A DNA stretch of 64,000 bases from positions 1 through 64,000 of the IMG/VR virus record IMGVR_UViG_3300009181_000033. The stretch is one strand, 5' to 3'. How positions within the stretch are numbered: the stretch's first letter is position 1; every line of letters starts with the position of its first letter. The notes beneath the pieces were generated by a model that was given only the letters and a program-made list of their open reading frames with translations, was not told the origin of the DNA and made no database searches. Below are positions 47,187 to 63,099 of this stretch, piece by piece. A program made the translations under genes and the position numbers.

Positions 47187-47483
47187 TCACTTTCCAAAAG
47201 TATAAATCTTATTTTCAGTCTTGGGTGTGGCCTCCTCTGCTGCATCTGCAGGTGTCGCACCCTTTGTTTTGAAACCAATATACTCCTCGGCGTCATCTGG
47301 GCGCCCTGGATCATTGCTGCCTTTATCTCCGGGAGACTTATACCAATATCCGTGAATGTCAGCACCTCTCTCTAGATCATAGGGATAAAACCCTTTGACT
47401 TCGGTGGGGTCTGCCGTAACGGCCGGACTCTCTGAGATGACTTTTTGGATTATCTTACGTAGTTGCCCAATGCTCATTTTCAT
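47187..47483 (-). CDS. Putative internal head protein (QLRxII leader family)
   Basis: N-terminus MKMSIGQLRKIIQKVISE. Confidence 0.6.
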   Translation of the reverse strand: MKMSIGQLRKIIQKVISESPAVTADPTEVKGFYPYDLERGADIHGYWYKSPGDKGSNDPGRPDDAEEYIGFKTKGATPADAAEEATPKTENKIYTFGK

Positions 47484-47491
47484 TGAAGCAC

Positions 47492-47800
47492 CTAAATGTC
47501 AAGAGTCTTTGGATAACCTTCTTCACCGGGTTTTGCAGGAGGTTTACCACGATCCCTCTTGGCCTTTATGTTTGCCCAGAGACCCTTTGAACCGCTTCTC
47601 TTCTTTTTTGCTTCACCCAAAGCAAAACCATTTTCTTCTTCCTCGACATCCTTGAGTCCCATTCCTCCACGGCCGACCGTGTCCATCTCTTCATCAGACA
47701 CAGATTCTCCTGTTCCTGGATACCAACGACCCGGAGGCCATGCTTCTTCTTCCAGGGCTTCTCTGATGATTCTTCTTAATTGTGACAAGGTAATCTTCAT
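47492..47800 (-). CDS. Putative internal head protein (QLRxII leader family)
   Basis: N-terminus MKITLSQLRRIIREALEE; basic C-terminal GLWANIKAKRDRG segment. Confidence 0.65.
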   Translation of the reverse strand: MKITLSQLRRIIREALEEEAWPPGRWYPGTGESVSDEEMDTVGRGGMGLKDVEEEENGFALGEAKKKRSGSKGLWANIKAKRDRGKPPAKPGEEGYPKTLDI

Positions 47801-47807
47801 ATAGATT

Positions 47808-47830
47808 ATATATGCCCAAGGGGCATATAT
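47808..47830. terminator. Hairpin between the zinc-ribbon gene and the leader-family gene
   Basis: ATATATGCCC-AAG-GGGCATATAT, 10-bp stem; no clear U-tract. Confidence 0.45.
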
Positions 47831-47857
47831 GGCTGCAGTGACGGTGATAAAAATTGT

Positions 47858-48208
47858 CTATAGTTTGCCTTTGTGGTTAGTAGCAGATGACTGAGTCACA
47901 GTCTTATAAGAAACACCAGGTGTTGTAGACAAATGAGTGCCGAGCTGACAAGACTTGCCTTTATTCATACCACTGTTGTTGCGCCAAAAATCTGCGTAAC
48001 GATTGCGATCAGCTGTCGAGTTAAATGACAGAACGGTAATTCCAGCCTGCTTTCCATCGCCGGCTTGAAGGCCGAGATATTTAACGGTCGGCTCATTTGA
48101 GCAATCAGGGCAATGATTGATCTTGCCACCAGCTACAAACTTGGCAGGAGAACGGGAATCGAACACATAACCACAAGCAATACATTCTCGATTCATAAGA
48201 ACCATCAT
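47858..48208 (-). CDS. Zinc-ribbon protein
   Basis: CIAC and CPDC pairs. Confidence 0.65.
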   Translation of the reverse strand: MMVLMNRECIACGYVFDSRSPAKFVAGGKINHCPDCSNEPTVKYLGLQAGDGKQAGITVLSFNSTADRNRYADFWRNNSGMNKGKSCQLGTHLSTTPGVSYKTVTQSSATNHKGKL

Positions 48209-48267
48209 ACAGGGGCGAACGACAAATTTGCTCCCCCAATTATTTTTAATTCAAACTAGAATGATTT

Positions 48268-48507
48268 TTAGATTTTAAAAGCATGCCAATCCATGCAAGG
48301 AAGATCAAACGATTTTAAATAATTTTGAACATCTTCCATTAGTTCTTTTTGGGTATTGCCCATGGGGAAAACAGGATCCTCAGAACACATAGCTGGATTT
48401 CCATGTGTGTCATAGTAAACTTCATAAATGGCATATTCTTCTTCTTGTTGGCCATCTACATCTGGATCACAAAGCTTCCTAAGAACCCTGTAGTTCCACG
48501 TATTCAT
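48268..48507 (-). CDS. Hypothetical phage protein
   Basis: TWNYRV..YAIYEVYYD..G-x-P pattern; coupled start. Confidence 0.65.
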   Translation of the reverse strand: MNTWNYRVLRKLCDPDVDGQQEEEYAIYEVYYDTHGNPAMCSEDPVFPMGNTQKELMEDVQNYLKSFDLPCMDWHAFKI

Positions 48508-48956
48508 TTTATTCCTTCCATTTTGGAAATAACGATGGACAGACCGTCCATCCAGGATTTATCATTTGGATGTAAACCATGTTTTGATTTGTTGTGTTTG
48601 CAAAATTTTAAAGAACGAAGAATGTGCTCAAATTCATCTTGCGAAAGAGCTAAATTGTATTTGGGTAATTCGCCCGGGTCTAGGATTGTTGAGTCTTTTT
48701 TATCATCTTCATGCTGCAAAAAGAAATTTGAAGTGCACGTGCAGGGTCTTATTGGAGAACAAAGAATTTCACATTTTTTACACCACCAAATACTGCCACC
48801 GCCTTCATTTATTGATTCAATTAAGGAATATTCATCTACATCAGAAGATGAAACTACCATCCCCGGATTTTTAATTAGTCTTATCAGGAGATTGTGTCCT
48901 TCTGTCGTGGCCCTCATCTCAGCCATTTTTAATTGTGTTAATATTGTTTGACTCAT
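48504..48956 (-). CDS. Hypothetical Cys-rich protein
   Basis: 150 aa; CKKC-x3-C-x5-C-x-C cluster. Confidence 0.6.
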   Translation of the reverse strand: MSQTILTQLKMAEMRATTEGHNLLIRLIKNPGMVVSSSDVDEYSLIESINEGGGSIWWCKKCEILCSPIRPCTCTSNFFLQHEDDKKDSTILDPGELPKYNLALSQDEFEHILRSLKFCKHNKSKHGLHPNDKSWMDGLSIVISKMEGIK

Positions 48957-49192
48957 TCATCATACTCTATTTTAGAAAAATGCAAATCATTGTACCAGCC
49001 AACCTTGCCTCGAGGAGTTAGAATCTTTGTGTAGGCACTACGTTCTAAAATTAGAACCGTTTCATTTTCAAAAATGACATCTACTACAAAATCTTTTTCT
49101 ATATCGTCAAATGAAATATGCCAGACATTTAAAAATGAAGACCCTATTGGTCTTACAATCAATAGTTCACCTAAGACACACTGCTCTTTCAC
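48953..49192 (-). CDS. KOW/SH3-like small protein (start re-called at GTG 49192)
   Basis: MKEQCVLGELLIV..KILTPRGKVGW; the upstream 11 codons in the ORF track derive from the IS607 right end and its flank. Confidence 0.6.
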   Translation of the reverse strand: MKEQCVLGELLIVRPIGSSFLNVWHISFDDIEKDFVVDVIFENETVLILERSAYTKILTPRGKVGWYNDLHFSKIEYDE

Positions 49193-49197
49193 AACAT

Positions 49198-49340
49198 GAT
49201 TTGAAAATGTTGGACATTTTCTCATACGTATTTTAGCTCCGAAGAGTTATTGACGTACATCTTCTGAAATCCTTGTAGAAAGTCCACGAAGTTTTCAGTT
49301 TGGGCAAACCATCTGCCCATGTGTCGTTTGGCTATGTTAG
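49198..49340 (-). ncRNA. Predicted TnpB omegaRNA (reRNA) scaffold overlapping the tnpB 3' end
   Basis: Hairpins TGGGCA/TGCCCA (49301-49319), CTGAAA/TTTCAG, CTC-TTCG-GAG (49237-49246), and terminal GAAAATGT/ACATTTTC (49203-49221) immediately before the right end. Confidence 0.55.
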
Positions 49341-50442
49341 TAGCCGAATTTAGGTCTCTATCAACTATCAAACCTGGTTCTAGTTCAACCTCTCTTATTG
49401 ATAGTTCTGAACTTAGTGTCTTGATCCCGGTCAAACAGTTGATTTGAGATGTGTAACTTTCATCGACTAGATGAAAATCTATTCCCGCATTCCTCGCTTT
49501 GTAATCAAGGAATGTTTTGAACCTAGACAACGTGCCTTGGTTCTGTGTGGACTTGTTAAGTCTTTTAGTTGAACGCTTGCCTTTTGGAAGCTTTTTAGTC
49601 TGAATATCACCAACAATCATTGTTCCAACTTTTTCTTTCAAACACGTGTCAACAATCACCTTGCTGACTTTATGCTGAAAATCTTTGTTCTTGTTGGAAT
49701 TTTTCCTAGCTAGTTTTTTATGAACTGAAGTTAACTTCTTCCAACGATTTGAACCTTTCTTCTTTTTGTCGCGAAGACTTTGAACATGTTCTTTTTGTCT
49801 TTCAGCCTTCTTGAACCTGTTGTTCTGAACTGCAAAAGGCTTCGTGGAATTTGAGAAACAGGTGGCAATTGAACTTACTCCTAAATCTATCGATAGAAAT
49901 TTTTCCCTGTCAAGATCATCATTCGTTGGCTTTTCAGAATAAGTGAAGATCAAAAAGCACTTCCCTTCTTCCTCTTTAACAACCATTGTTTTGATTGTGA
50001 CGTTTGTCACACCACACTTACGAACATAGTCTGGTAGATCTATGTTTAATTTGTGCCCATCGATCAATGAGATCTGAACGCCTTGTTCAAGGAGTTTAAA
50101 CCCGCCACTTCCGTTGTTCCAATGAAATTGGAACGTACAAAAATTCTTGTAGGACTTAAACTTATAGGGAAATTGTGCAGTTGAATCTTTCTTCTTCAAG
50201 GCATAGAATGATTTGATTGAATCAAATAGTGTTCTACTTGTGGTTTGCGCTGGGTGTGACAAGATCGTTAGTTGATTATCATTCCTGAAATTCTTATATC
50301 GCTGATTGAGTTGCTTAAAATCTTCACCTTTCTTAGCAAATTCAAGCAAATGATTGTAGAGCAACCTGTGCTCGTTTGAAAGAGTTCGAATGACAATAAC
50401 TTGTTGTCGTGAAGGAAAGATTCTAACCTTTAGAGATTTCAT
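49222..50442 (-). CDS. tnpB: TnpB RNA-guided nuclease (IS607-associated)
   Basis: KVRIFP N-terminus; RuvC-I SIDLG, RuvC-II IVGDI, RuvC-III DRDLNSATNI; YKA-x2-AG, ESYTSQ. Confidence 0.9.
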   Translation of the reverse strand: MKSLKVRIFPSRQQVIVIRTLSNEHRLLYNHLLEFAKKGEDFKQLNQRYKNFRNDNQLTILSHPAQTTSRTLFDSIKSFYALKKKDSTAQFPYKFKSYKNFCTFQFHWNNGSGGFKLLEQGVQISLIDGHKLNIDLPDYVRKCGVTNVTIKTMVVKEEEGKCFLIFTYSEKPTNDDLDREKFLSIDLGVSSIATCFSNSTKPFAVQNNRFKKAERQKEHVQSLRDKKKKGSNRWKKLTSVHKKLARKNSNKNKDFQHKVSKVIVDTCLKEKVGTMIVGDIQTKKLPKGKRSTKRLNKSTQNQGTLSRFKTFLDYKARNAGIDFHLVDESYTSQINCLTGIKTLSSELSIREVELEPGLIVDRDLNSATNIAKRHMGRWFAQTENFVDFLQGFQKMYVNNSSELKYV

Positions 50443-51052
50443 CTTTAATCTCCTCTAGGTTTTTCACAGATGCGCTGATCTTCTTCTTGTAATTTCTTGA
50501 ACCATACAATTTCATGCTGAAGTGATGAACAATTGAGATGAGATCTTCTGCAAACTCTTGTTCTTTTGTCTTGTCGGATTCAGAATCATCAACAACAACA
50601 ATCTTAAAGTTATTCATGACAGACAACTCTTCAAAAAGTTCAAACCCAAACCTAAGAAGACGATCCCTGTAATGAACCACCAGAGTTTCTATTTCGTCAT
50701 TCTTAATCAATGACAAAAGTTCTATTAGACCTTTGCGTTTATAATTTAATGCAGAGCCAAATTCAGAAATGACCTTATCAATCTTCATTCCATTAGCAAT
50801 GCAGAAATCCTTAATTCTTCTTTCTTGTTCCTTTAGAGAATTTGCCTGTTGTTGTGTTGATTCTCTACAATAAATCACGTTCAGTCGAGTCTTTGATGTT
50901 ACTCCAATAACTTGACGATAATGTTCATCTGTGTAACGTCTATGACCAGACTTTAATACGACAGGTTTCAAAGCACCCTCCTTTTCCCATCGGTAAAGAG
51001 TCTTACTCGTCAACCCGCACATCTTTGCAAATTTCGTAACTGAGTACATCAT
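50423..51052 (-). CDS. tnpA: IS607 TnpA (MerR-HTH + serine recombinase)
   Basis: KTLYRWEKEG-x-L-x5-SGHRRY HTH; IYCRES nucleophile; EFGSALNYKRKGL, RDRLLRFGFE, EDLISIVHHFS-x-KLYG-x-R. Confidence 0.93.
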   Translation of the reverse strand: MMYSVTKFAKMCGLTSKTLYRWEKEGALKPVVLKSGHRRYTDEHYRQVIGVTSKTRLNVIYCRESTQQQANSLKEQERRIKDFCIANGMKIDKVISEFGSALNYKRKGLIELLSLIKNDEIETLVVHYRDRLLRFGFELFEELSVMNNFKIVVVDDSESDKTKEQEFAEDLISIVHHFSMKLYGSRNYKKKISASVKNLEEIKDEISKG

Positions 51053-51065
51053 CTAACAATAGATA

Positions 51066-51113
51066 TTAGACAGGGTCAAAAATGTCTAAACTTTTTTCAA
51101 AATGTCTAAACTT
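51066..51113. repeat. IS607 left-end repeats
   Basis: AAAATGTCTAAACTT at 51079-51093 and 51099-51113 (20-bp period), plus an inverted TTAGACA near 51066. Confidence 0.8.
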
Positions 51114-51293
51114 GTTTAAATGGATTGGAGTATAATCATACCACCATTGCGTCGTACCATCAGTGAACAAAACATAACAACTGCTCTCACCCGATTCTGT
51201 GTTTCTCGATATATCAAGTATGATTCCTAAAGAACATTCTTTTTCAGAGAACACCCAATCATCGTAGAGACAAATCAAGTCACCTACTTTCAT
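51066..51293 (-). CDS. KOW/SH3-like small protein whose C-terminus is supplied by the IS607 left end
   Basis: MKVGDLICL..LGIILD..YVLFTDGTTQWW; residues after YTPI come from IS sequence. Confidence 0.6.
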   Translation of the reverse strand: MKVGDLICLYDDWVFSEKECSLGIILDISRNTESGESSCYVLFTDGTTQWWYDYTPIHLNKFRHFEKSLDIFDPV

Positions 51294-51490
51294 AGAATCT
51301 CTACTTCTCCTAGATAGCACCAACCAATTCCTTGTCGAATTAGGACTTTAATTAGGCGTTGGGTTTCAACAAATTCTTCAGGAAGATCAACAGCTCTACA
51401 CAAATAAGTGGTGCCGGTCCTAGTATAGGTGAGCAGACAATTTTTATTAATGGGCCTTCTTGTTGAATCACAAAATTTTTGTTTTTCCAT
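51290..51490 (-). CDS. Small hypothetical protein
   Basis: 66 aa; coupled to the next gene. Confidence 0.55.
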   Translation of the reverse strand: MEKQKFCDSTRRPINKNCLLTYTRTGTTYLCRAVDLPEEFVETQRLIKVLIRQGIGWCYLGEVEIL

Positions 51491-51790
51491 GTTCTATAAG
51501 GTAAACAATATTACATCTATGTTTAAATAGATCAATATTTTGATCACCGTTTGAAAATTATGCCTAGGACTTGATTTCAAAGATGTTTTATGATTTCATC
51601 TATTTTTCTCGAACGCTCCAAATTTCTTTTTGAAGTTTATCAAGTTCGCCTCGTCAAACCCAGAAATCCCTAACCGTGTGGCTCAAATCTAAGATCATCA
51701 CTTAGGTTTTCACGTCTTCATCATTGAATCGTTCGTAGACCAGGTCGCATAGAAAAACAATATTGCTATAAGACAAATTTGGACAACTTA

Positions 51791-52081
51791 TTAGGCGCTT
51801 GATTTTTTCTTTTTTCTTTTTTCTTTTTTGTCGCCTGCTAGCAAAATTTCTTCGGTTGTCAATTGAACCGAATCCCCATTGTTTTCAGGCGACATCCAAG
51901 GAAAAATTTCGTGTTCATTTGTCTTCAATTGTTCAATTGAACTCAACAAACATATTTCTTGAACCTCGGATATTCTCTTTTTTACTTCATTTGTCAAATT
52001 GTTGTATGCGATCCTTTCGGCCTCAAAAGGGTTGTCAGCATCAACCAGCATTTCTGTTAAAAATGAAATTCGATACAACAT
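51791..52081 (-). CDS. Hypothetical protein (start re-called at ATG 52081)
   Basis: ATAATTA 5 nt upstream (52087-52093); basic C-terminus. Confidence 0.55.
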   Translation of the reverse strand: MLYRISFLTEMLVDADNPFEAERIAYNNLTNEVKKRISEVQEICLLSSIEQLKTNEHEIFPWMSPENNGDSVQLTTEEILLAGDKKEKRKKKKSSA

Positions 52082-52284
52082 GTTTTTAATTATTAATGTT
52101 GCCACGTTTTTATTTTTCTATATCGAATTAAATTAAAAAACGGTGTTATATCTAAATGCTAACTCTTGGAAGAAAAATAGGTTCAAATTTTTGCATGTTG
52201 TTAATTAACATTGTGGGCCCATTGCTCCCGGGAAACATAACATCAACATCATTCAGGTCATAAAAGTAGACTAGAAGTGGCAAC

Positions 52285-52980
52285 ATGGCACGAGACAATC
52301 AAAGATATAGAAAAACTTATTCTTTCTATCGACCAACGCCACAAATGTCGGCGACTGTAAATGACAATTATGTTAATGAAAAAATTAATTCTCTAGACTG
52401 GAAACACTCTGTCAGAGTGGCGACAAAAGAAAACATCGACACAGGTGCTTCTTTTTTAAGCATAGACGGAATAAATTTGGTCGTTGGGGATAAAGTCCTC
52501 GTAAAAGATCAGAACACGCCGGCAGAAAACGGAATTTATGTTTATTCCGCAGGCGGTCTCCTCGTAAGGTCAGCTGATGCAAATGAACTTACACTTTCTC
52601 CCGGTGCCACCGTTTATGTAGAAGAAGGGACAAATCAAAAATCATATTGGTCTTTAACAAGCCTTGAGCCAATAACAATTGATTCAACTGCACAAACGTG
52701 GGAAAACATCATCAGCATACCCATTTTCAAAAAAGGGAAACTCAGTGGTGAACTAGTCACATCTGAGTACGGAGGCACTCTTGACTTTTCATCTATCGGC
52801 TCCCTTAGATCTACGGCAGGAGCATATGAATCAATGGATGTCTTTTCAAACGGAATCTTGTTGGATCAGGATGATGACTATACCGTTCCCACAGTGTCAT
52901 CAATAACTTTCGGTCCAACTTTTCGTGTAATAAACACCGACAAAATTACGATAACGATTAGAAACGCAGCCTCCCCCTAA
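52285..52980 (+). CDS. Fibre adaptor-like protein (two modules shared with neighbouring fibres)
   Basis: N-half matches the 33751 N-terminus; C-half matches the 53163 C-terminus. Confidence 0.75.
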   Translation: MARDNQRYRKTYSFYRPTPQMSATVNDNYVNEKINSLDWKHSVRVATKENIDTGASFLSIDGINLVVGDKVLVKDQNTPAENGIYVYSAGGLLVRSADANELTLSPGATVYVEEGTNQKSYWSLTSLEPITIDSTAQTWENIISIPIFKKGKLSGELVTSEYGGTLDFSSIGSLRSTAGAYESMDVFSNGILLDQDDDYTVPTVSSITFGPTFRVINTDKITITIRNAASP

Positions 52981-53162
52981 ACCACTCACCATCATCTTCT
53001 CTTTGAACACACTTTTTGTGTATTTCTAGAAATGCTAGAAAAATATTTTTATTCATGGTTGAATATATTCAATAATGAATATTTATTGACGTTGAGACGT
53101 GTCGTGCACTAACGCACTTCATGCTTGACAACCTCAAAGTAATTACAAAGGAAGGTTTTTAT

Positions 53163-55457
53163 ATGGCTCAAACACATATACAACAGCATCAGATTAGCGG
53201 CTCGCTTTCAATGGACATCTCAGATAATGTCGAGCGCAATAATTTGGTTAAAGCAGGTCGCACAATTATTGACGACCTCAATTCACTTCGCTCACAGGTG
53301 AAAGGAATTCTCGGTTCAGCCGCATGGACCGACGAACAATCCATCTCCCTGCAGAACCTTAAGGCTCAGTTGACGGGAACCTTGGTTGCCAACTCAGCTT
53401 CTTTTGCCAGTGCCGTTTATGTGAGCGGTGCAGGTTCATTGGTGGTTGATGGCGCAGCTACATTTAACGAGGCAGCTGACTTCAACAATGGCATTACCGC
53501 TGATGTACTAAAGATCGATGGAGACGTCTCACAAAGACTCTACATCGTTGGTACCTCTGGTGAACTCAAAGACGAGTCAAAGCTCGTCTTCAATGGCTCA
53601 GCACTCACCGTGGACGGAGACCTCAACATCTCCGGAAGCTCAGTGTTTGCCAACCCAGCCGACTTTAACAATGGAATCACCACTGATGAACTAAAGGTTG
53701 ACGGCGACGTCTCACAACGTCTCTACATCGTTGGTGCCTCTGGTGAGCTCAAGGACGAAGAGAAGCTCGTCTTCAACGGTTCAGAACTCACAGTTGACGG
53801 CGGACTTAATGTCTCCGGAAGCATTGTGATGGGTGGGACTATCACGCTCAACGAAGCAGCCGACTTCAACAAAGGAATCACCGCTGATGAACTAAAAATC
53901 GACGGTGACACAGCCCAACGTCTCTACATCGTTGGTGCTTCTGGTGAGCTCAGGGACGAAGAGAAACTAACGTTTGATGGTTCAGAGTTAAATGTAACAG
54001 GGGATCTAGAGATCAGCGGAGCTGCTGACCTCAATGGTGCCTTGGATGTTGCTGGTCAAGTTGACCTCGCTGCCTCAGAGGTTGCCACCAACGTTCGTGG
54101 TACACTTTCAGTGGCGGAAGCCGCTGACCTCAATGGCACCCTAGACGTCGCTGGTCAAGTTGACCTCGCTGCCTCAGAGGTTGCCACCACAATCCGTGGC
54201 ACACTAAATGTTGCTGAGGAAACAACCCTCGCTTCTGCCAAGGTTTCTGACCTCACTCAGACTTATATTGTCTTCGCTGGTCTCGATGGCGCTCTTGAAG
54301 ACAGTGAGGCTCTCTCCTTCGCCTCAAACCAACTAACAGTTGGTGCTTCTGGCGCAGCTGGTTCTGTCACCATCAAGAATGCCTCTGGTGATCCAATCTT
54401 GCAAGCTGGCTCCGGTGAGCTAGTGATGCGTGACAACAATGGCGATGCAGTCTTGTACGTCAACTCGGTATCCAAGACCTTTGATCTGAAGAATGTTGAT
54501 GGAGACTCTACATTCCATGTTGCAGCAGCGTCAGGTAATACAGAGGTTGCCGGTACATTAGATTCAGCTGGTGACTTTGCGGTCGCCTCTGACAAATTCA
54601 CTGTCGCAGCAGCATCAGGTAACACCGCAGTTGCTGGTACATTAGATGTCACCGGGAACGCAATCTTTGCAGGAAACGTTCAGGTCGACGGAGATCTTCG
54701 CGTCAAGGGTTCGATGACCTACATCGACACCGTCAACATTCGCGTCGAGGATGCATTCATCTATCTCGCCACCGGCTCACTTGGATCCACCGATTCAGGT
54801 GTTGTCCTTCACGGTGGTGCTGGTGCTGATATGGACCTTGCCATCGCCCAAAAGGGCGGCTCTGGTGAGTTCATATTCGGCAAGGGCAATCGTGCCCCTG
54901 ACGGAGAAGGTGCTCTTGACGGAATGGTTCTCGTTCCTGCCAAGCTCAGTGAGGTAAAGTTCGGCTCAGCCGAAAATGCCCTCAGCGGCTCAATGTCAAT
55001 CGCCGGAAACGATATCAAGCTCGCCGCCTCGGCCGCTGCAATCGTATTCGACGATGCTTACCGTGCTTCTTCAACATACGCTGCTCCCATTAAGCTCGCC
55101 GCCTCGGCGTCCGAGTGGTCAGCGTTCCAGACACAGTATCCCGGCAAATCACTTCTCGGTGCCCTTGGTGCCGGCGGTGGTGTCGGTGTCAACTTCCGCA
55201 AGAAGATAATCATGGGGAACAATGCTAACTTCAGCGGCAATACACTTGACATCGCTGCAGCCGGCGTCGGTTCTCTTCGCAGCACCGCTCAGGCAGACTC
55301 CGACTATGGTCTCGATGTCTACCTCAACGGTGTCCTCTTGGCTCTCGGCGCTAGCGCCGACTACACAGTGCCAAGCGTATCACAAATCAGCTTCAACTAT
55401 GCTTTGAACAGCGATGACGTTCTCACAATCGTCGCCAAGAACATCGCATCTGCCTGA
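53163..55457 (+). CDS. Long beta-repeat fibre protein
   Basis: Start re-called at MAQTHI with SD AAGGAAGG; internal 61/67/55-aa and 33-aa repeats; VEDAFIYL..G trimer-fibre motif; C-terminal DVYLNGVLL..DYTV module. Confidence 0.8.
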   Translation: MAQTHIQQHQISGSLSMDISDNVERNNLVKAGRTIIDDLNSLRSQVKGILGSAAWTDEQSISLQNLKAQLTGTLVANSASFASAVYVSGAGSLVVDGAATFNEAADFNNGITADVLKIDGDVSQRLYIVGTSGELKDESKLVFNGSALTVDGDLNISGSSVFANPADFNNGITTDELKVDGDVSQRLYIVGASGELKDEEKLVFNGSELTVDGGLNVSGSIVMGGTITLNEAADFNKGITADELKIDGDTAQRLYIVGASGELRDEEKLTFDGSELNVTGDLEISGAADLNGALDVAGQVDLAASEVATNVRGTLSVAEAADLNGTLDVAGQVDLAASEVATTIRGTLNVAEETTLASAKVSDLTQTYIVFAGLDGALEDSEALSFASNQLTVGASGAAGSVTIKNASGDPILQAGSGELVMRDNNGDAVLYVNSVSKTFDLKNVDGDSTFHVAAASGNTEVAGTLDSAGDFAVASDKFTVAAASGNTAVAGTLDVTGNAIFAGNVQVDGDLRVKGSMTYIDTVNIRVEDAFIYLATGSLGSTDSGVVLHGGAGADMDLAIAQKGGSGEFIFGKGNRAPDGEGALDGMVLVPAKLSEVKFGSAENALSGSMSIAGNDIKLAASAAAIVFDDAYRASSTYAAPIKLAASASEWSAFQTQYPGKSLLGALGAGGGVGVNFRKKIIMGNNANFSGNTLDIAAAGVGSLRSTAQADSDYGLDVYLNGVLLALGASADYTVPSVSQISFNYALNSDDVLTIVAKNIASA
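53475..54218 (+). repeat. Internal tandem repeats of the fibre gene
   Basis: Three ADFN-x-GIT..QRLYIVG-x-SGEL units starting at 53475, 53658 and 53859; two near-identical 99-bp units starting at 54021 and 54120. Confidence 0.9.
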
Positions 55458-55477
55458 GGTTAATCTGTTAACAAAAT

Positions 55478-55509: not shown

Positions 55510-55533
55510 TCTATTTGGAATATAATTAATAAC

Positions 55534-56127: not shown

Positions 56128-56136
56128 TCAAATGGT

Positions 56137-56320
56137 CTAAGCCTTGTCTTCTCCATTTTCTCTCAAATAAATTTCATAACGTTTTTCATCGGAACACAAA
56201 ACATCGCCTACTATTAACCCAGGAAATTCCTCTGTCAAGTATTTGCAAAAGAATTCCTACTCTTAAATCATTTGGGGAAGAACTGGCATTCCATTCAACC
56301 AAGTTACCTTGTTTAGAATT
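56137..56320 (-). pseudogene. Frameshifted KOW-like gene remnant
   Basis: KQGNLVEW..RVGILLQIL in one frame continues as LIVGDVLCSDEKRYEIYLRE in another; no intact start. Confidence 0.45.
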
Positions 56321-56321
56321 C

Positions 56322-56540
56322 TCACGCGAGTGGCCTTAACCCTTCCAGGCGCACCCAACCCACCATTCCATCCACTAGCACCCTGTAATATGGAACATCC
56401 GTATTGGAAAAACCGAAATCTAAACAAACTGCAATCGATTTCTCGCTAAATGTTCCCACAAAAATTCGATGATGCCCAATGATATTCTTATAGATCTGTC
56501 TATCACCAAATGCAGACATCAACAAATCGCCAGGCTTCAT
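56322..56540 (-). CDS. KOW/SH3-like small protein
   Basis: MKPGDLL..RVLVDGMVGWV. Confidence 0.65.
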   Translation of the reverse strand: MKPGDLLMSAFGDRQIYKNIIGHHRIFVGTFSEKSIAVCLDFGFSNTDVPYYRVLVDGMVGWVRLEGLRPLA

Positions 56541-56546
56541 GAGTCC

Positions 56547-56576
56547 ACATTACCACAGCCGAAACAACATTTACAC
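56547..56576 (-). promoter_or_regulatory. Early/middle promoter candidate GTGTAA-N18-TAATGT
   Basis: Ends 6 nt upstream of ATG 56540. Confidence 0.55.
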
Positions 56577-56843
56577 CTCACGTAATAATGCATAACTAAC
56601 GTAACCAATTCCCTGTGGAAACATCACTTTTGCCCACTTGAAATCGGCTCGCGTCTGAACTGAAATGACCTCGAGAAGCACGCCAGGAGTTCGTAACGGA
56701 ACTAATATCTTCTCTCGAGGTATATCCACACCACGTGAAACAGAAGGTGAAGAGATATCGGTATACACGTTAGAGTACTTCACACCAGCATCATCTGTGG
56801 CGTTATAAGAACTATGAACGTGTACGAGATCACCGATGTTCAT
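56571..56843 (-). CDS. KOW/SH3-like small protein
   Basis: MNIGDLVHV..GVLLEV..KVMFPQGIGYV. Confidence 0.65.
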   Translation of the reverse strand: MNIGDLVHVHSSYNATDDAGVKYSNVYTDISSPSVSRGVDIPREKILVPLRTPGVLLEVISVQTRADFKWAKVMFPQGIGYVSYALLREV

Positions 56844-57391
56844 CTACGATTATAACTAGAACGGTATGGGGTATCACCGATAAGTTCAGTAACAACGGTA
56901 TTCTCTACCCTCAAACCGGTTCCGTTGAAATCAATTCGGTTCACATGAACCCCAAGTTCATCCGCCAATTTTTGAATTGGAACCTCTCCGTGAGAATCCC
57001 TCAGTTTCAAGAATGCATCATGAACATCCTGAGGATCTGGTGAATCCCATGAGGTTGGCATATCTCTATCAACATCACGGATGTAATCATCGAAACCCTT
57101 GGATTCTCTATTGAGTTGGTAAGGGGCCTTCCACTGTTTCTTTGGTTTCCCCGCGGATAAACCCTTCAGTTCACCACGAAGTTCCTCAAACTTATCGTTT
57201 GGAAGGGTGGTGTAACCCATCTCATCAACCTCAACGTGATCGAGGTATTGAGGAGGAACACTATCCATATCCAGAATCTCACCGGAATCACGGTTAACAA
57301 CACCGCCATCCTTCAATGGAGCTCCGGTTACTCTCTTCACCTCTTCACGGATAATCCTACGTAACTGTGATACTGTTATTTTCATGATCAA
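56840..57391 (-). CDS. Putative internal head protein (QLRxII leader family)
   Basis: MKITVSQLRRIIREEVKR. Confidence 0.65.
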   Translation of the reverse strand: MIMKITVSQLRRIIREEVKRVTGAPLKDGGVVNRDSGEILDMDSVPPQYLDHVEVDEMGYTTLPNDKFEELRGELKGLSAGKPKKQWKAPYQLNRESKGFDDYIRDVDRDMPTSWDSPDPQDVHDAFLKLRDSHGEVPIQKLADELGVHVNRIDFNGTGLRVENTVVTELIGDTPYRSSYNRR

Positions 57392-57687
57392 CCCTTATAG
57401 AACTGCCCGAGGTGAAGATCTTCCTCAACCTGCATGATGAGTTCCTCAATTTTTTCACCGAGAACTTCGCAAGCCGAATCGCACTGTGCTTCCCAAACAG
57501 GTTTACCACCGCTGGCATCCATGCTTGGATCCATGGGATCAAACTGGGATTTCCAACCATCACAAACCGCATCTAACATGGTTTGTAACTCGGCTGAACC
57601 GGTACCATACCCCAGTTCCTCCTTGAGGGTTGCTCTCTTAACTTCTTCTGCAATAATCCTACGTAGTTGTGTTGCGGTTAGTTTCAT
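57388..57687 (-). CDS. Putative internal head protein (QLRxII leader family)
   Basis: MKLTATQLRRIIAEEVKRATLKEE; ATAATTA 6 nt upstream (57694-57700). Confidence 0.65.
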   Translation of the reverse strand: MKLTATQLRRIIAEEVKRATLKEELGYGTGSAELQTMLDAVCDGWKSQFDPMDPSMDASGGKPVWEAQCDSACEVLGEKIEELIMQVEEDLHLGQFYKG

Positions 57688-57741
57688 AAACTTTAATTAT
57701 TCCTCACTTCTCATTTTTCAAGTTTATCACGGAGTTTCGTG

Positions 57742-58188
57742 TCAATTTTCCTCGCCCGGCCACTTCAGCGCGGCCTTGCACAGATCATAAACACTACAAT
57801 CATCATCACCCTGTTCAAAGGCATGGGATTTCAAACAATCCGCTTCAAGAATCACTTGGATAACACTCCTCATCTCCCTCAGTTTTTCTCGAAGCACGGA
57901 ACAATGGTAGTATCCAGCTTCCCCACAATGGCAAGGTTTCTCAGCCAACTCATCATCGGCTAGAATCCCATCCTTATTCCTCTCCCACCATTCCTTGGCC
58001 TGAAGAATCATGTTTTCGTTGATCTTATCTGTTCCATGAACTTCATTGAGAAATCCTACCTCCTCAAACTCCATCACCGGATCCTCAAATCCAAACAACT
58101 CACCTAGCTTGAAACTAACCTCTTCCTCACCAATCCTACAACAGATGAGATCGTTATTGTTGAACAGGAACCCGTATGAATCACTCAT
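57742..58188 (-). CDS. Hypothetical protein
   Basis: 148 aa; CHC-x6-HC cluster; coupled start. Confidence 0.6.
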   Translation of the reverse strand: MSDSYGFLFNNNDLICCRIGEEEVSFKLGELFGFEDPVMEFEEVGFLNEVHGTDKINENMILQAKEWWERNKDGILADDELAEKPCHCGEAGYYHCSVLREKLREMRSVIQVILEADCLKSHAFEQGDDDCSVYDLCKAALKWPGEEN

Positions 58189-58367
58189 GATACTTTCCTA
58201 AGAATTGAAGATGAATATCTAAAAATCTTTCCCCTGCTCTCATCGTTCATCATCAACACATTGTATAAATGCGTTCCACTATTAAGTTCTATGATCACGG
58301 CAAGTGGAGGTACGGAAAAACCAGGATGAAGAACCTGAACAAGATCACCTGGGGTTAAATCACTCAT
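58185..58367 (-). CDS. KOW-like small protein
   Basis: TPGDLVQV..AVIIE..YNVLM. Confidence 0.6.
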   Translation of the reverse strand: MSDLTPGDLVQVLHPGFSVPPLAVIIELNSGTHLYNVLMMNDESRGKIFRYSSSILRKVS

Positions 58368-58663
58368 ATTTCCTTCCTACCCATCAAGGAACTCCAAGGA
58401 TCCAATGTAACCCTACCTGGTTTCTTATTCTCATCCATGATGTGTTGTGATAGTGATGCTCCAATTCTCACATTCAACTCATGGCATTCCTCCCTACATT
58501 CCTGTAGGTTTCCTTCGAACTGTTCCAATGTTTGAAACCCCGGAACCTGAAGAACAACATAATAGAAATCCTCCATTTCACCACTGGAATTCTTAAACTG
58601 CCCGGCCGGAATCACGGTGAAAGGTTTCCAATCACTCAACATTCTTCTCCATCTCCTTTTCAA
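58364..58663 (-). CDS. Hypothetical protein
   Basis: 99 aa ORF in the coupled early array. Confidence 0.5.
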   Translation of the reverse strand: MKRRWRRMLSDWKPFTVIPAGQFKNSSGEMEDFYYVVLQVPGFQTLEQFEGNLQECREECHELNVRIGASLSQHIMDENKKPGRVTLDPWSSLMGRKEI

Positions 58664-58889
58664 TATTTACCCATTGAAGCACTAAACTTTTCAATCCCTC
58701 CCAGGGGTAAAGAATGTGATGGTTGCTGTTCTCGGTGGAGAACTTCACAAAGTAATTCACCTTGGAGTTTCCATCATCACCGATCTCAACCGATCCAACT
58801 ATCATCTCCATGGTAACATTGGTGCTCGTGGCGGTTGGGCCTGATACAGGAATCACCTTGTTGTTCTCTAGATCGATTTTATCACTCAT
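58632..58889 (-). CDS. Hypothetical protein
   Basis: 85 aa ORF in the coupled early array. Confidence 0.55.
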   Translation of the reverse strand: MSDKIDLENNKVIPVSGPTATSTNVTMEMIVGSVEIGDDGNSKVNYFVKFSTENSNHHILYPWEGLKSLVLQWVNIEKEMEKNVE

Positions 58890-59094
58890 TATTCATTTCC
58901 TCCGTTTTATTCAAACACTCCACCGAACAATAACTCCTACCACCAACACTATACCCCAATGCAAGGTTGAACCTCACCTCACAATCCGGATTGAAACAAG
59001 GAAAATCCTTTGCGTTTGGAATCTCCGATGTTTTCATTCCCTTGAACTCATCGGTTAACCACCATGATACCTTACCACAGTATTCCTCACACAT
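58882..59094 (-). CDS. Small zinc-finger protein
   Basis: CFNPDC..YCSVEC. Confidence 0.6.
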   Translation of the reverse strand: MCEEYCGKVSWWLTDEFKGMKTSEIPNAKDFPCFNPDCEVRFNLALGYSVGGRSYCSVECLNKTEEMNNE

Positions 59095-59558
59095 CAGCGA
59101 ACATCTTTCCTATGTGAAAACCAATCTGCTTGGCGGGTTGAATTGTTACAATAACCGCCAGTACCATTTTCCCTGCGAGTTTTACAAACCGAATCTTTAC
59201 AATTCAAACACATCTCTCCCGTTCCAGTATCAACAGTAGGATGACAGGAACATCGAGCATAATACTCACTCATCAGTGAACCTCCTCGGTTCTCCTTTAT
59301 CTTCCACGTTGTTTTTGAGGATAAGAGAGATTTGATCTCATCCAACACCAGATCGCCGTATTCCGATTGTTTGATTTCAAATACCATTGTGTTTCCGATG
59401 TGGGTTGGTTGGTAAACATCCAGGGATTTGAGGTGATTCTTTTTGAGGAACAACCCAACCTTCCTGTGAACCTCCCACAGTTCTGCATAACTTCCTTTTT
59501 GATCTGGAGATTCAATGGTTATCTTCAAAGTTCCTCCCCATACTCTCCCACCTATCAA
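59094..59558 (-). CDS. Hypothetical protein, possibly two fused genes
   Basis: Internal SD GGAGG before MSEYYARCSCHP..CLNC..C. Confidence 0.45.
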   Translation of the reverse strand: MIGGRVWGGTLKITIESPDQKGSYAELWEVHRKVGLFLKKNHLKSLDVYQPTHIGNTMVFEIKQSEYGDLVLDEIKSLLSSKTTWKIKENRGGSLMSEYYARCSCHPTVDTGTGEMCLNCKDSVCKTRRENGTGGYCNNSTRQADWFSHRKDVR

Positions 59559-59715
59559 TCATAACAATCCGATCCTTTACCAGATCATAGAAGAATTGGT
59601 ACTGGAATTCCGAGGTGAAATCTACCTCAAAATCCAGGTAATCCTCCGGGTTTGGATTCTCCACCCCGTTATGGGTTCTTGGTGGATCCAGAACAACTCT
59701 AATGGTTCTCAGCAT
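59512..59715 (-). CDS. Small hypothetical protein
   Basis: 67 aa, coupled array. Confidence 0.55.
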   Translation of the reverse strand: MLRTIRVVLDPPRTHNGVENPNPEDYLDFEVDFTSEFQYQFFYDLVKDRIVMIDRWESMGRNFEDNH

Positions 59716-59897
59716 GGTTCTTCACCCCAGTTAAAGTTCACTTCATCGAGCACAGAATCATATTTCGATTGCAATTCCCCAAGTTTCTCTCTCAAGAACT
59801 TGATGCAAACCCTTGGATTTGTGTGGGAATCCATGTTATCAAGTGGATCAAGTTCACCTTCACACTCCAAACAATATCTCACCACCTTCTTCTTCAT
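59709..59897 (-). CDS. Small zinc-binding/coiled protein
   Basis: CLEC..H-x4-C. Confidence 0.55.
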   Translation of the reverse strand: MKKKVVRYCLECEGELDPLDNMDSHTNPRVCIKFLREKLGELQSKYDSVLDEVNFNWGEEPC

Positions 59898-59908
59898 GGT
59901 TCCATCCT

Positions 59909-60121
59909 TCAGTATTCCTTAATGATTTTCTTGGTGGTTTTGAAACCATCCCAATCCACAACAACCTTCTCAATGATGACTGGATCATCTGGATCATAAT
60001 AGGGAGATTCCCGAATCCATGTTTCGGAAAACTTCTCCACATCACCCTTCTCTCCACTTTGTGCAAGGATCTTTCCTGATTTGGTGGAGGAAATGAAGTA
60101 GTGATGCCCTCTGTTCTTCAT
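59909..60121 (-). CDS. Small hypothetical protein
   Basis: 70 aa, coupled array. Confidence 0.55.
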   Translation of the reverse strand: MKNRGHHYFISSTKSGKILAQSGEKGDVEKFSETWIRESPYYDPDDPVIIEKVVVDWDGFKTTKKIIKEY

Positions 60122-60136
60122 GGTTCTACCTTACCA

Positions 60137-60418
60137 TCATCCTGCGGAACTTTGCACAACTTCCAGATATTCGGCTGGAATCCAGCCGGTATTTCCGTTG
60201 TTCACCATGATCTTATGGGAACGAGGAATTCCATTCATATCGAAGTGATCCTCAAGAACCACACCGGTGTTTTCACGGGTGAATCCTGAGTTATTTGCCC
60301 GAAACTCGCACTTGGGGTCCACGTACAGGTACGAGTGTTTCACGTACTTATCCTTGAAGAGAACTACGGAATCACCAATCTTCTTGATTGAAGTTGAGAG
60401 GGTGAACTTATTCCTCAT
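60137..60418 (-). CDS. SH3-like small protein
   Basis: KIGDSVV..TGVVLE..KIMVNNGNTGWIPAEYLEVV. Confidence 0.7.
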   Translation of the reverse strand: MRNKFTLSTSIKKIGDSVVLFKDKYVKHSYLYVDPKCEFRANNSGFTRENTGVVLEDHFDMNGIPRSHKIMVNNGNTGWIPAEYLEVVQSSAG

Positions 60419-60450
60419 GATTCAATTCTATCACCTCTCGGTTTCACTTT

Positions 60451-60693
60451 TCACCATCCCCAACCGGTATAAATCCCATCAGAAACAAATGGATAATTTG
60501 GATTTCTTCCCCTAGGAACTTCGTGTTCAAAGATTCCGTAGGAGGAATGAACCACGAGAATCCTTGAGATTCCATCCGAAGGAATTCCTGGAAGTTCACC
60601 TAGGATTGTGTAGATGCAGTTTCGCATTCTTGAAAGAATCACATCACCAGCCTGCAATTCCCATTCCAGGGCAATTCCACCAATTGATCTCAT
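60451..60693 (-). CDS. Small protein, paralog of 62432..62701
   Basis: ALEWELQAGDVIL..IYTILGELPGIP vs ALESELQVGDVIL..IYTIVGELPGIP. Confidence 0.7.
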   Translation of the reverse strand: MRSIGGIALEWELQAGDVILSRMRNCIYTILGELPGIPSDGISRILVVHSSYGIFEHEVPRGRNPNYPFVSDGIYTGWGW

Positions 60694-60830
60694 TACCCCA
60701 CCAGGTGTTTATCTGATTTCCACTCCGAAATGAGGAGCCAAAGGAAATTCCAAAATGATTCTCTGATGTACAGATAACCACCATGGTAACAACACCAACA
60801 CCTACCTTCACTAATTTCACCGGGTTTCAT
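60693..60830 (-). CDS. 45-aa protein, paralog of 62704..62886 (not in ORF track)
   Basis: MKPGEISEGRCWCCYHGGYLYIRESFWNFLWLLISEWKSDKHLVG*. Confidence 0.7.
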   Translation of the reverse strand: MKPGEISEGRCWCCYHGGYLYIRESFWNFLWLLISEWKSDKHLVG

Positions 60831-61083
60831 TGATCACCTTCACCCAACCTTCAAAGATCCATCCAGGCCCCTGAGGGAAAAGTGCATACAAGAATGTTCG
60901 ATCATCAAGCAGGTTTCCTGGTTTAACCGTTTGCTTCTTTAGGATGATTCCGGTTGTACCTTTCGGGATTTGAAATGATGGCCCTAACATTCCTACGTTG
61001 GCTCGCCAAGGAATTTTGGCACTTGAGTAAATGGTACCAACCTCATTGGCATGGAACACGATCATATCACCGGGTTGTTTCAT
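60817..61083 (-). CDS. KOW/SH3-like small protein
   Basis: MKQPGDMIV..TGIILK..YALFPQGPGWI. Confidence 0.65.
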   Translation of the reverse strand: MKQPGDMIVFHANEVGTIYSSAKIPWRANVGMLGPSFQIPKGTTGIILKKQTVKPGNLLDDRTFLYALFPQGPGWIFEGWVKVINETR

Positions 61084-61113
61084 GGTTCCAACGTACCTCT
61101 GTTCAGCGAAACA

Positions 61114-61611
61114 TCATGCTTCAATCTTTCTCATTCCCCAAATCTTCTGAGGATCGTACTCCAGAGAATATCGAATGGTTCCTCCTTCGGATTTCTCTGG
61201 AGTTTGCGATTCGATATCCCGGATTAGTTGTGCGTGATACTCAGGATCCAACTCGATTTCCCATAAGATATCTTCAGCATCCTCCACCACCACAGGAATG
61301 CCTCTTCTTGGTTCCACGTTTGGCTCAGAATAATCTTCTTCAGCCTCATCGGTTTCTACCCCAACGAATTGAATGAATTTCTGGAACCATTCCAGGATCT
61401 CGGAATCACCGCCAACAGATAGAAACGAAGAATCCCATTCGTTCGAGCGGTGGTGCCAGAAATCGATTGCCTCAGATTCACTAATGGTAACCCCTAGTTC
61501 CCTTTTGAGCACATCCTGGATCCGGTGAACATCCTCTAGATCATGGTACATCCCAGAGGTACCATTTCGGCACTGAAAGGTTTTTGTTACAATATCTTGA
61601 TTGATTTTCAC
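61114..61611 (-). CDS. Hypothetical protein
   Basis: 165 aa, acidic. Confidence 0.6.
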   Translation of the reverse strand: MKINQDIVTKTFQCRNGTSGMYHDLEDVHRIQDVLKRELGVTISESEAIDFWHHRSNEWDSSFLSVGGDSEILEWFQKFIQFVGVETDEAEEDYSEPNVEPRRGIPVVVEDAEDILWEIELDPEYHAQLIRDIESQTPEKSEGGTIRYSLEYDPQKIWGMRKIEA

Positions 61612-61913
61612 CGTTTCTCCTCCAACTTCTCATAATCCTTGATGATTTCCTCCCAATGATCCACCAAAAGTTCACCCAATTTTTCACCAACCAAACCAAG
61701 GTTAACCTTCTTTAGTTCCTCCAGGTTTGGTGAATATGAACCACCTAGAGGGAAATCCTTGAAGTGATGATGTTCATCTGAATCAATTCCTCGCCTGATT
61801 AATTCAGATAGCAGGTTGGCAAACCACACCTCGGTGTTAAAATTCCTTCCCTCTACATCAACATATAGATTGGAATCACCACCAAATTCTTTACAGGGAT
61901 TATCTATGCTCAT
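61608..61913 (-). CDS. Hypothetical protein
   Basis: 101 aa, ATGA-coupled. Confidence 0.6.
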   Translation of the reverse strand: MSIDNPCKEFGGDSNLYVDVEGRNFNTEVWFANLLSELIRRGIDSDEHHHFKDFPLGGSYSPNLEELKKVNLGLVGEKLGELLVDHWEEIIKDYEKLEEKR

Positions 61914-62237
61914 CCTTCTTCTCCTTCAACTTTCACCATTTCATTGATGTAATATGGAATTGCACCTTGTGGAAGAGGTTCAACGGGGAATAAACTCTTT
62001 GCAACCTGATTGTAGTTAATCCTACCTCCGGGCCTCCCCAATGTATCGAGGAAGGGATTGTAAAAATCACCCCATAAAACCCTCCACCTGATTATTGGAG
62101 TTTTTTCTCACAATGGTTCCGGTGGAACTGGAGTAAAGGAAACGAACCATATCTCCAATTTTCCAATCAACCTCATCGAGTAGTTTTCCATCGAGGGTGA
62201 GGAGGGAGGAGATGAATACCGTGTTTATTTCACTCAT
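61910..62237 (-). pseudogene. KOW-domain gene with a single-base insertion (about 62080-62082); C-terminus resembles a capsid-protein peptide
   Basis: ATGA overlaps at both ends; 328 nt = 109 codons + 1; removing one G gives KIGDMVRF..QVEVLWGD..INYNQVAKSLFPVEPLPQGAIPYY. Confidence 0.7.
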
Positions 62238-62419
62238 GATTCTTTCTCCAGTTCCCCTGGGGCGATGATTTGTTCCGGACGGAAATAAATCTGTTTCCCA
62301 TCGGGTAGCAGGGTGAGGTAGGATTGAATCCCATAGGAATTCCACCTTATATCCAGGATTATCCCGGTTCTTGTTGGCTCACCAAAAAAGTTTGTAAAAC
62401 ACAGATCACCAACATCCAT
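62234..62419 (-). CDS. KOW-like small protein
   Basis: MDVGDLCF..TGIILD..YLTLLPDG. Confidence 0.65.
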   Translation of the reverse strand: MDVGDLCFTNFFGEPTRTGIILDIRWNSYGIQSYLTLLPDGKQIYFRPEQIIAPGELEKES

Positions 62420-62431
62420 AACCCTATCCTA

Positions 62432-62701
62432 TCATGGTTCCTCAGGGTTTTGCACCGTTCCTAGAACAATATAGGTTCCATCGGTTACGTAAGAATAGTT
62501 CTCACACCTTCTCATGGGAACTTCGTGTTTAAAAACCGTTCCAGGCCGGGAAGAATGAATCAATAGGATCTTTGAAACACCATCACCAGGAATTCCAGGA
62601 AGTTCACCAACGATTGTATAAATTGTGTTTCTGGATTGGGATAGGATAACATCACCAACCTGTAATTCACTCTCCAGGGCAACGGAACCGATCTCCCTCA
62701 C
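62432..62701 (-). CDS. Small protein, paralog of 60451..60693
   Basis: Shares LQ-x-GDVIL, IYTI-x-GELPGIP and HEVP motifs. Confidence 0.7.
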   Translation of the reverse strand: MREIGSVALESELQVGDVILSQSRNTIYTIVGELPGIPGDGVSKILLIHSSRPGTVFKHEVPMRRCENYSYVTDGTYIVLGTVQNPEEP

Positions 62702-62703
62702 CG

Positions 62704-62886
62704 TTACCCCACAAGGTGTTTATCGTGGCGGAATTCTGTTAGGATCTCCCACAGGAGGGCCGGAAGTGAATCATGGATGTGAAGGTAACCTGGTATACCA
62801 TCATACATGCAACACCAGGCCGGGCCAGGTGAAATAACTCCGGGCTTTTCTCTCCAAATCCTGAATGATTTCATTAGGTTAAACAT
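62704..62886 (-). CDS. Small protein, paralog of 60693..60830
   Basis: KPG-x-IS-x-G-x2-WCC..GYL-x-I..LW..DKHLVG*. Confidence 0.7.
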   Translation of the reverse strand: MFNLMKSFRIWREKPGVISPGPAWCCMYDGIPGYLHIHDSLPALLWEILTEFRHDKHLVG

Positions 62887-63099
62887 TCAACTACGAATTT
62901 CTAGTTCAGCTTCGAGTTCGGTGATTTGCCTTTTTAATTCAGCAATTTGTAATCTAATCTGAGCGGTGGAAAGATTACTAAAATCTTTTGGTTTAGGTAA
63001 ACCAATCATTCTACTTTTTTCTTTCTTATCTTCGGTTAGTTGGGCTCGCTTAATTTCTTCTGTAATAATCTGCTTAAGTTGTGCTGCGGTGATTTTCAT
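62887..63099 (-). CDS. Putative internal head protein (QLRxII leader family)
   Basis: MKITAAQLKQIITEEIKRAQLTE; ATATTTA 5 nt upstream (63105-63111). Confidence 0.65.
   Translation of the reverse strand: MKITAAQLKQIITEEIKRAQLTEDKKEKSRMIGLPKPKDFSNLSTAQIRLQIAELKRQITELEAELEIRS

Follow-up and report, generated by a model that had tools for sequence, protein, structure and literature searches.

The first 64,000 nucleotides of IMG/VR virus record IMGVR_UViG_3300009181_000033 (positions 1–64,000, referred to here as the window) contain five genes whose small protein products begin with the same short peptide and have otherwise dissimilar bodies. The best explanation of this N-terminal peptide, the leader, is probably that it is a propeptide that targets proteins to the capsid – more exactly, to the prohead core – and is removed by the prohead protease, like the capsid-targeting sequence (CTS) of the internal proteins of phage T4.

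Each of the five leader open reading frames (ORFs) is on the minus strand and begins with MK(I/L/M)(T/S)xxQL(R/K)xII. In a six-frame translation of the whole window, the core QL[RK]xII was found at these five N-termini only. The leader genes (lengths in amino acids, aa) and the segments encoding the leader are:

47187–47483, minus strand: gene for a 98-aa leader protein, the second member of a tandem pair with the gene starting at 47800
47492–47800, minus strand: gene for a 102-aa leader protein, the first member of this tandem pair, with I12-R-E14 and L16-E-E18
56840–57385, minus strand: gene for a 181-aa leader protein with a two-module body, abutting the upstream 99-aa leader gene to form a tandem pair
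57388–57687, minus strand: gene for a 99-aa leader protein, with the leader at residues 1–23 (I12-A-E14, L21-K-E23) and a small helical body domain
62887–63099, minus strand: gene for a 70-aa leader protein, with I12-T-E14, L21-T-E23 and a coiled-coil-looking body
57619–57687, minus strand: the 23 codons encoding the leader in the 99-aa gene, an example of the shared tag
57332–57385, 47747–47800, 47430–47483 and 63031–63099, minus strand: the equivalent leader-coding segments of the other four genes

Four of the five genes thus lie in two closely spaced tandem pairs. When a hidden Markov model (HMM) of the leader was run on the genome's full set of 5,223 stop-to-stop segments, the five window leaders had E-values of 1e-7 to 1e-10. 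The 98-aa protein has the most divergent leader (E-value 7e-8), with K14 in place of E14. An earlier reading of the window from its sequence only had named these five leaders, their dissimilar bodies, and an [I/L]-x-E motif in each of them. All five were confirmed at ORF N-termini on the minus strand, though the third start had to be moved, and the motif was read from all five translations: four leaders have I12-x-E14, the 98-aa protein has I16-S-E18, and the proteins starting at 57687 and 63099 have a second L-x-E at residues 21–23. The best BLASTP match between any two of the bodies had an E-value of 0.12.

None of the five proteins has a significant Pfam domain. The 98-aa protein matched nothing in Pfam or PHROG, and the sole Pfam signal of the 70-aa protein was a sub-threshold one to DUF1192. 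More generally, Pfam and PHROG searches with the leader proteins and with most head-module proteins gave no informative match, and Megablast and tblastn searches with the region and one leader protein found no close relatives among deposited phages. The C-terminal 35 residues of the 102-aa protein (window 47492–47600) contain a short basic motif, GLWANIKAKRDRG..., with matches inside or at the ends of proteins from five PHROG families that otherwise differ and have no known function. To judge from these matches, it may be another portable short module.

Homologs from metagenomes were found for two of the proteins. The 181-aa gene was taken to start with the ATG at 57385 instead of the TTG (57391) where the mechanically called ORF opens, because its orthologs begin MKITVSQL. 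Among the 135 homologs of this protein, modules are shuffled behind a constant leader, and its C-terminal module is also found without a leader. The 99-aa protein has 66 metagenomic orthologs. In an alignment of 20 of these (52–83% identical), M1, Q7, L8, I11, I12, E14 and E15 are invariant.

The constraint on the leader acts on the peptide. In 53 unrelated carriers from other viral contigs, the leader columns alone are invariant, and mean column identity is 10%. Leu8 is encoded by all six of its codons, and third codon positions carry 0.3–0.8 bits of information, compared to 2.0 bits at first and second positions. Synonymous sites vary freely while the amino acids stay the same, so selection is on the peptide. 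Leader copies within the genome likewise use different codons for the same residues, and the 30 nucleotides (nt) upstream of leader genes carry a weak Shine-Dalgarno signal only. The pattern used to collect leaders fixed residues 1–15, and conservation statistics are independent of it only past residue 15 or in ortholog alignments. Past residue 15, positions 16 and 19/20 are hydrophobic and Glu is frequent at 22. A second [LI]-x-E, ending at residues 17–27, occurs in 60% of 160 leaders where 12% would be expected, and a stretch rich in Gly, Pro and Asp comes after it.

Structure prediction is consistent with a leader that forms a helix of its own, with a disordered linker between it and the body. 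The AlphaFold2 model of the 99-aa protein has a helix at residues 5–24, disorder at 24–31, and a confidently predicted helical body at 32–92. A fold search with this model found no PDB match below an E-value of 3. In the low-confidence model of the 181-aa protein, which was too uncertain for a fold search, a leader helix at 5–20 is again followed by a linker.

The window is the beginning of a 297,894-bp record with direct terminal repeats, a GC content of 42.9%, and an estimated completeness of 100%. This is the genome of a complete, distant, uncultured T4-like jumbo phage, and sequences near-identical to it are present in freshwater and lake metagenomes. Its prohead protease (genome 256305–256916, minus strand) is of the T4 gp21 type (Pfam PF03420 Peptidase_S77, 88 bits; PHROG 207 'head maturation protease', E-value 2e-50), with the His of GELDHP and the Ser of GISSRG aligned to the catalytic residues of T4 gp21. 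The major capsid protein is of the gp23 type (PF07068, 259 bits), the portal of the gp20 type (PF07230, 251 bits), and an acidic 689-aa scaffold-like protein is encoded between the protease and capsid genes. The nearest capsid proteins from cultured phages are those of Flavobacterium phage immuto (43%), Microcystis phage Mel-JY01 and Rhodothermus phage RM378, with cyanomyoviruses at ca. 29%.

The cleavage specificity of this protease is probably that of gp21. The site VLKE↓S in the capsid protein aligns with FLTE↓A, where T4 gp23 is known from experiment to be cleaved (motif from PMC9026906), and relatives show LL[KR]E↓ at this position. Because these sites align, the L/I-x-E specificity of the gp21-type protease appears to have been kept in this clade, and the capsid protein itself would be cleaved here. 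The N-terminus of the capsid protein (LDQLAQGIRE) was considered as a further leader; it has a slight likeness only and no score against the leader HMM.

Some features of the head genes stand apart from the leader. The portal gene (genome 257774–260902, L004:13774-16902, minus strand) is split by an intein with an HNH endonuclease. Directly after the capsid gene are a homing-endonuclease-like gene containing NUMOD3 and, as judged by eye, an HNH-like gene. A related jumbo phage (IMG/VR record G002, L173:11111-14966) carries two gp23-type capsid genes in tandem, whose products (636 and 627 aa) start with almost the same sequence.

A genome-wide motif search, which the sequence-only reading had proposed as a check, found 11 strong leader copies in the 298-kb genome, one of them internal. 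All leader copies of the genome are on the minus strand, which is also the strand of the head genes. Besides a weaker copy that starts at genome position 195213, there are variant leaders within the head module:

genome starts 86912, 87446, 214416, 247619 and 193265, minus strand: strong leader copies outside the window, found with the leader profile
between the protease and the scaffold-like gene, minus strand: variant leader of an 81-aa protein, starting MKLTNTMLRKIILQEV
between the protease and the scaffold-like gene, minus strand: variant leader of a 138-aa protein, starting MKLSKFELKNIVKE
just past the capsid gene, minus strand: variant leaders of a 114-aa and a 327-aa protein
just upstream of the portal gene, minus strand: variant leader of a 106-aa protein

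The internal copy belongs to a 308-aa ORF (genome 192339–193265, minus strand) with two leaders, one N-terminal and one near residue 80, and a Cys-rich segment between them. In related phages, a conserved protein of 128–148 aa near the protease starts with the leader-like MKKSELKNIIKE, and 10 of 18 related head modules have a canonical leader gene near the protease gene, between ca. 5 kb upstream and 7 kb downstream of it.

Leaders are widespread in other viruses. A degenerate DNA pattern for the leader, scanned over IMG/VR viral contigs, matched at least 120 stretches. Among the matches listed there are 183 leader ORFs; their median length is 110 aa, and their consensus reads MKITK-x-QL(K/R)-x-IIKEE. 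In 19 related T4-like records, a relaxed DNA pattern had 112 matches, compared to none for a reversed control pattern, and nearly all leader copies were on the strand of the protease. One genome of 289 kb has 24 copies, 17 of them inside 7.5 kb. Searched with a 30-residue profile, 1.84 billion cluster representatives yielded 10,524 leader proteins at an E-value of 0.001 or below. More than half of the top matches (85 of 150) have two or three leaders, 60–250 residues apart. Their arrangement could reflect either fusion of array neighbors or true polyproteins.

Leader-bearing viral records generally encode a T4-type prohead protease. An S77 protease is present in 18 of 27 such records. Of the 12 records with a completeness of 57% or more, 11 have it, and completeness is 13–58% in the nine records that lack it. 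These are raw counts from contigs picked for their larger size.

The leader looks virus-specific, to judge from the genomes searched. Among 185,579 prokaryote genomes, the pattern was found in just 14 stretches, all on contigs of metagenome-assembled genomes (MAGs) and none in an isolate genome. These are most likely misbinned phage contigs, because three of the five MAGs tested encode S77. Neither is the leader a general feature of the T4 superfamily, because the cultured T4-like phages that were scanned lack a full leader: the pattern is absent from Flavobacterium phage immuto, Microcystis phage Mel-JY01, P-SSM7, RM378 and S-BM3, and an HMM scan of immuto, Mel-JY01, P-SSM7 and S-BM3 found only shortened variants, in immuto, starting MKKSQLRQIIKE, with no leader in the cyanomyoviruses P-SSM7 and S-BM3. 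A search with a 22-aa leader query, probably too short or masked, returned no matches. Full-text searches of the literature outside subscription journals turned up no description of the leader strings, or of a CTS resembling the leader in marine or T4-like phages.

The leader has much in common with the T4 CTS. Like it, the leader is a short, MK-starting N-terminal sequence common to otherwise unrelated small proteins (PMC9026906, PMC3012670), and like the T4 internal-protein genes, the leader genes are hypervariable and clustered (PMC9026906, PMC3012670). The phage also has gp21-, gp22-like, gp23- and gp20-type head machinery, as the T4 system does. In the T4 record, IPII and IPIII begin MKTYQEFIAE, and mutagenesis of the T4 CTS showed that residues 4 and 7 act in targeting, and residues 8 and 10 in processing (PMC9026906). 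Numbered from the cleavage site, Y4, F7, I8 and E10 of T4 are P7, P4, P3 and P1, and L8, I11, I12 and E14 of the leader fall at the same four spacings. From this spacing we infer that these leader residues correspond to the T4 positions, with P7, P4 and P3 hydrophobic and P1 a Glu that completes an [I]-x-E site.

There are also clear differences from T4. The leader is longer (ca. 16–23 residues), has an N-cap T-x-x-Q, and often contains two L/I-x-E sites. A genome may have 11–24 leader genes, compared to three internal-protein genes in T4. Multi-leader ORFs are found in the leader family and are not a feature of the T4 CTS system.

If the leader works as a capsid-targeting propeptide, its N-terminus would form an amphipathic helix from about residue 4 to residues 16–23, and the face made up of L8, I11, I12, 16 and 19/20 would dock the protein onto the scaffolding core during prohead assembly. 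The gp21-type serine protease would then cut after the Glu of I12-x-E14, and also at the second L-x-E at residues 20–22 where there is one. Both sites would lie just ahead of the flexible linker. The folded body would in this way be freed inside the head, where it would be packaged along with the DNA, and it would probably be delivered when the phage infects. Multi-leader ORFs fit a cleavable module better than they fit a signal that requires a free N-terminus.

The T4-type capsid targeting suggested by the sequence-only reading has thus gained support from the T4-like head genes, the aligned cleavage site, the variants in the head module, the co-occurrence with S77, and the residue spacing; encapsidation and cleavage are still what we infer from these. 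The other suggestion, that the cargo has an anti-defense role, found no direct support, and the bodies are nearly without recognizable domains. Leader-protein bodies are small, ca. 45–300 aa long, with no body-to-body BLASTP match below an E-value of 0.1. Among 53 longer carriers, AAA_33, EF-hand, DUF6321 and DUF6745 domains were each found in single members, and the remainder had no Pfam match.

Several observations weigh against the capsid-targeting reading. Strict leader genes are not clearly enriched near the head modules of jumbo genomes, where they are mostly in distant arrays. The leader has no detectable homology to MKTYQEFIAE, with only MK and I-x-E in common, and [LI]-x-E may simply arise from a helix that is amphipathic and rich in Glu. 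The calculated isoelectric point is 4–6 for 10 of 15 bodies, making them mostly acidic, in contrast to the T4 internal proteins, which are reported in the literature to be basic. Finally, the co-occurrence with S77 shows only that carriers are T4-like and does not point to the head in particular as the partner of the leader.

Two other readings, each unlikely, compete with it most closely. In the first, leader proteins dock to the prohead core as auxiliary scaffold or core parts, like T4 gp67, gp68 and gp22, and are cut up and expelled before DNA packaging, so that they are not cargo. In T4, gp67, gp68 and the scaffold gp22 are small gp21 substrates whose genes lie next to that of the protease, and in this same neighborhood the phage and its relatives encode leader-like proteins of ca. 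80 and 130–148 aa; the variants between protease and scaffold are on small coiled-coil-like proteins. T4 gp67 contains LIKEE, some leader proteins carry the C-terminal RWxxLAG[IL] of the scaffold (described below), and acidic bodies are poorly suited to lie beside packed DNA. On the other hand, most leader genes are outside the head module, unlike those for the T4 core proteins, and Pfam and PHROG searches of the head-module proteins found no detectable homology to gp67 or gp68. The body of the 99-aa protein is predicted to be compact and confidently folded, unlike a degradable scaffold; the cargo includes P-loop kinase-like, EF-hand and DUF domains; and hypervariable arrays of up to 17 genes with shuffled modules resemble accessory genes.

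About as improbable is a leader that serves as a general docking or oligomerization helix for some other conserved machine of phage or host – a replisome or clamp, RNA polymerase, or a membrane site – and has no connection to the capsid. Co-occurrence with S77 fits this equally, as it proves only that carriers are T4-like, and so does the distance of most strict copies from the head genes of jumbo genomes. The Q-L-x-x-I-I core is also, we presume, loosely reminiscent of clamp-binding motifs. A docking helix of this kind leaves much unexplained, however: the invariant Glu-Glu straight after the hydrophobic pair, the over-represented second L-x-E ahead of the linker, the match to the T4 P7/P4/P3/P1 pattern, the leader variants on head-module proteins, and the location of nearly all copies on the head-gene strand.

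Two further readings are largely excluded by the codon data, HMM scores, body comparison and Pfam matches. It is very improbable that the conserved element acts at the level of nucleic acid, as a translation or regulatory RNA element or as recombination homology for cassettes, with the peptide incidental. Tandem arrays, modules shuffled behind a constant 5' end, and multi-leader ORFs that look like fusions of array neighbors would suit such an element, but synonymous positions are free while amino acids are invariant, copies in one genome encode the same residues with different codons, and the 30 nt upstream offer nothing beyond the weak Shine-Dalgarno signal. Least credible of all is similarity by chance or within one fast-diverging paralogous family recognizable by its N-terminus alone: the small size and frequent adjacency of the genes would suit recent duplicates, but HMM E-values are low, the reversed-pattern control had no matches, bodies vary in length (63–327 aa), composition and predicted fold, a few bodies belong to the independent Pfam families AAA_33, EF-hand and DUF6321, and orthologs retain both leader and body, so the bodies are not simply decaying.

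Among other known systems, the jumbo phages phiKZ and SPN3US have many head-internal proteins, among them inner-body and ejection proteins, that lose N-terminal propeptides after Glu, often at redundant sites (PMC9026906, PMC7411985). Their protease is a diverged homolog of gp21 with the three-residue cleavage motif S/A-x-E, compared to I/L-x-E here, and their propeptides are long and mutually dissimilar, in contrast to the single shared tag described here. A phiKZ-type inner-body system was rejected for this phage, which has I/L-x-E as its motif and whose capsid protein and protease both match T4 families. Short, portable terminal tags also lead cargo into HK97-fold shells in the case of encapsulin cargo-loading peptides and the C-terminal coat-binding helices of scaffold proteins. 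Those tags are C-terminal and not removed, whereas the leader is N-terminal with a protease-type site.

A second shared tag, at the C-terminus, was observed in the same genome. The 689-aa scaffold-like protein ends ERWARLAGIVK, and RWxxLAG[IL] also ends the 327-aa leader protein and a 304-aa protein and is found ca. 55 residues before the end of a 313-aa ORF. The loci are the genome 253353–254422 region (L004:8353-10422), L004:2636-3619, a plus-strand ORF ending at ca. 166320, and a minus-strand ORF from 197198. Scaffold-like proteins of related phages share this end, and some also bear an N-terminal leader. RWxxLAG[IL] may be a coat- or portal-binding tail, and by analogy it may act like the encapsulin and scaffold tails.

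A wider proposal, which we hold as possible and with less confidence than capsid targeting itself, is that the leader marks a very large and hitherto unrecognized class of head-loaded, probably host-injected proteins in uncultured aquatic T4-like phages, with the capsid as a programmable container for effector delivery and RWxxLAG[IL] as a second tag perhaps borrowed from the scaffold. If this were true, the cargo list of a capsid could be read directly from sequence. If the leader is indeed a capsid-targeting tag, a simple sequence rule would name the proteins packaged by thousands of uncultured phages of lakes and oceans, a class otherwise invisible without virion proteomics, and would yield a large pool of candidate host-takeover or counter-defense proteins. 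The three internal proteins of T4 would be the small end of a strategy enlarged to two dozen genes in some jumbo phages, and the leader would provide a second packaging tag, distinct in sequence, with which foreign proteins could be loaded into T4-type heads. From the P7/P4/P3/P1 pattern common to both tags comes a testable model of recognition by the prohead core and the protease.

The sequence-only reading had also placed a late motif before two of the leaders, and this did not hold. None of the five leader genes in the window has the canonical T4 late promoter TATAAATA upstream, and this promoter is under-represented in the genome, with 6 sites compared to ca. 25 expected. It was rejected as the promoter driving leader genes, being neither enriched nor upstream of them. 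A different motif, ATATATAA, has 8 sites in the 298 kb, three of them 12–41 nt upstream of leader or leader-like genes (47800; genome 86912 and 261266). From these positions, ATATATAA may be a phage promoter for these genes. One site is upstream of the gene for a 138-aa protein starting MKIVKEIFKAIVQE. Sites include:

47806–47813, minus strand: promoter-like motif ATATATAA, 12 nt upstream of the gene starting at 47800
genome 86945–86953, 261285–261292 and 161910–161917: further ATATATAA sites

Mobile elements sit among the leader genes of the window. At 49222–51052 (minus strand), a TnpB-like gene with OrfB_IS605 and Cas12f-like TNB domains overlaps the gene for a serine recombinase with a MerR-type helix-turn-helix, an IS607-like pair. 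A separate IS200-type Y1 transposase is encoded at 63245–63685 (minus strand).

Other genes in the window also show signs of duplication or sharing of parts. A small two-gene cassette is duplicated at 60451–60830 and 62432–62886 (minus strand); its 80-aa and 89-aa products are 62% identical, and the adjoining short ORFs are alike by eye. Several small ORFs between 56 and 62 kb start with a similar M-x-x-GD-hydrophobic motif and, on this resemblance, may be another small paralogous family. On the plus strand, two fibre-like genes at 52285–52980 and 53121–55457 encode a common C-terminal domain of ca. 75 residues (44% identity). The longer of them (53121–55457) has bactofilin-like repeats and matches a PHROG family of structural proteins.

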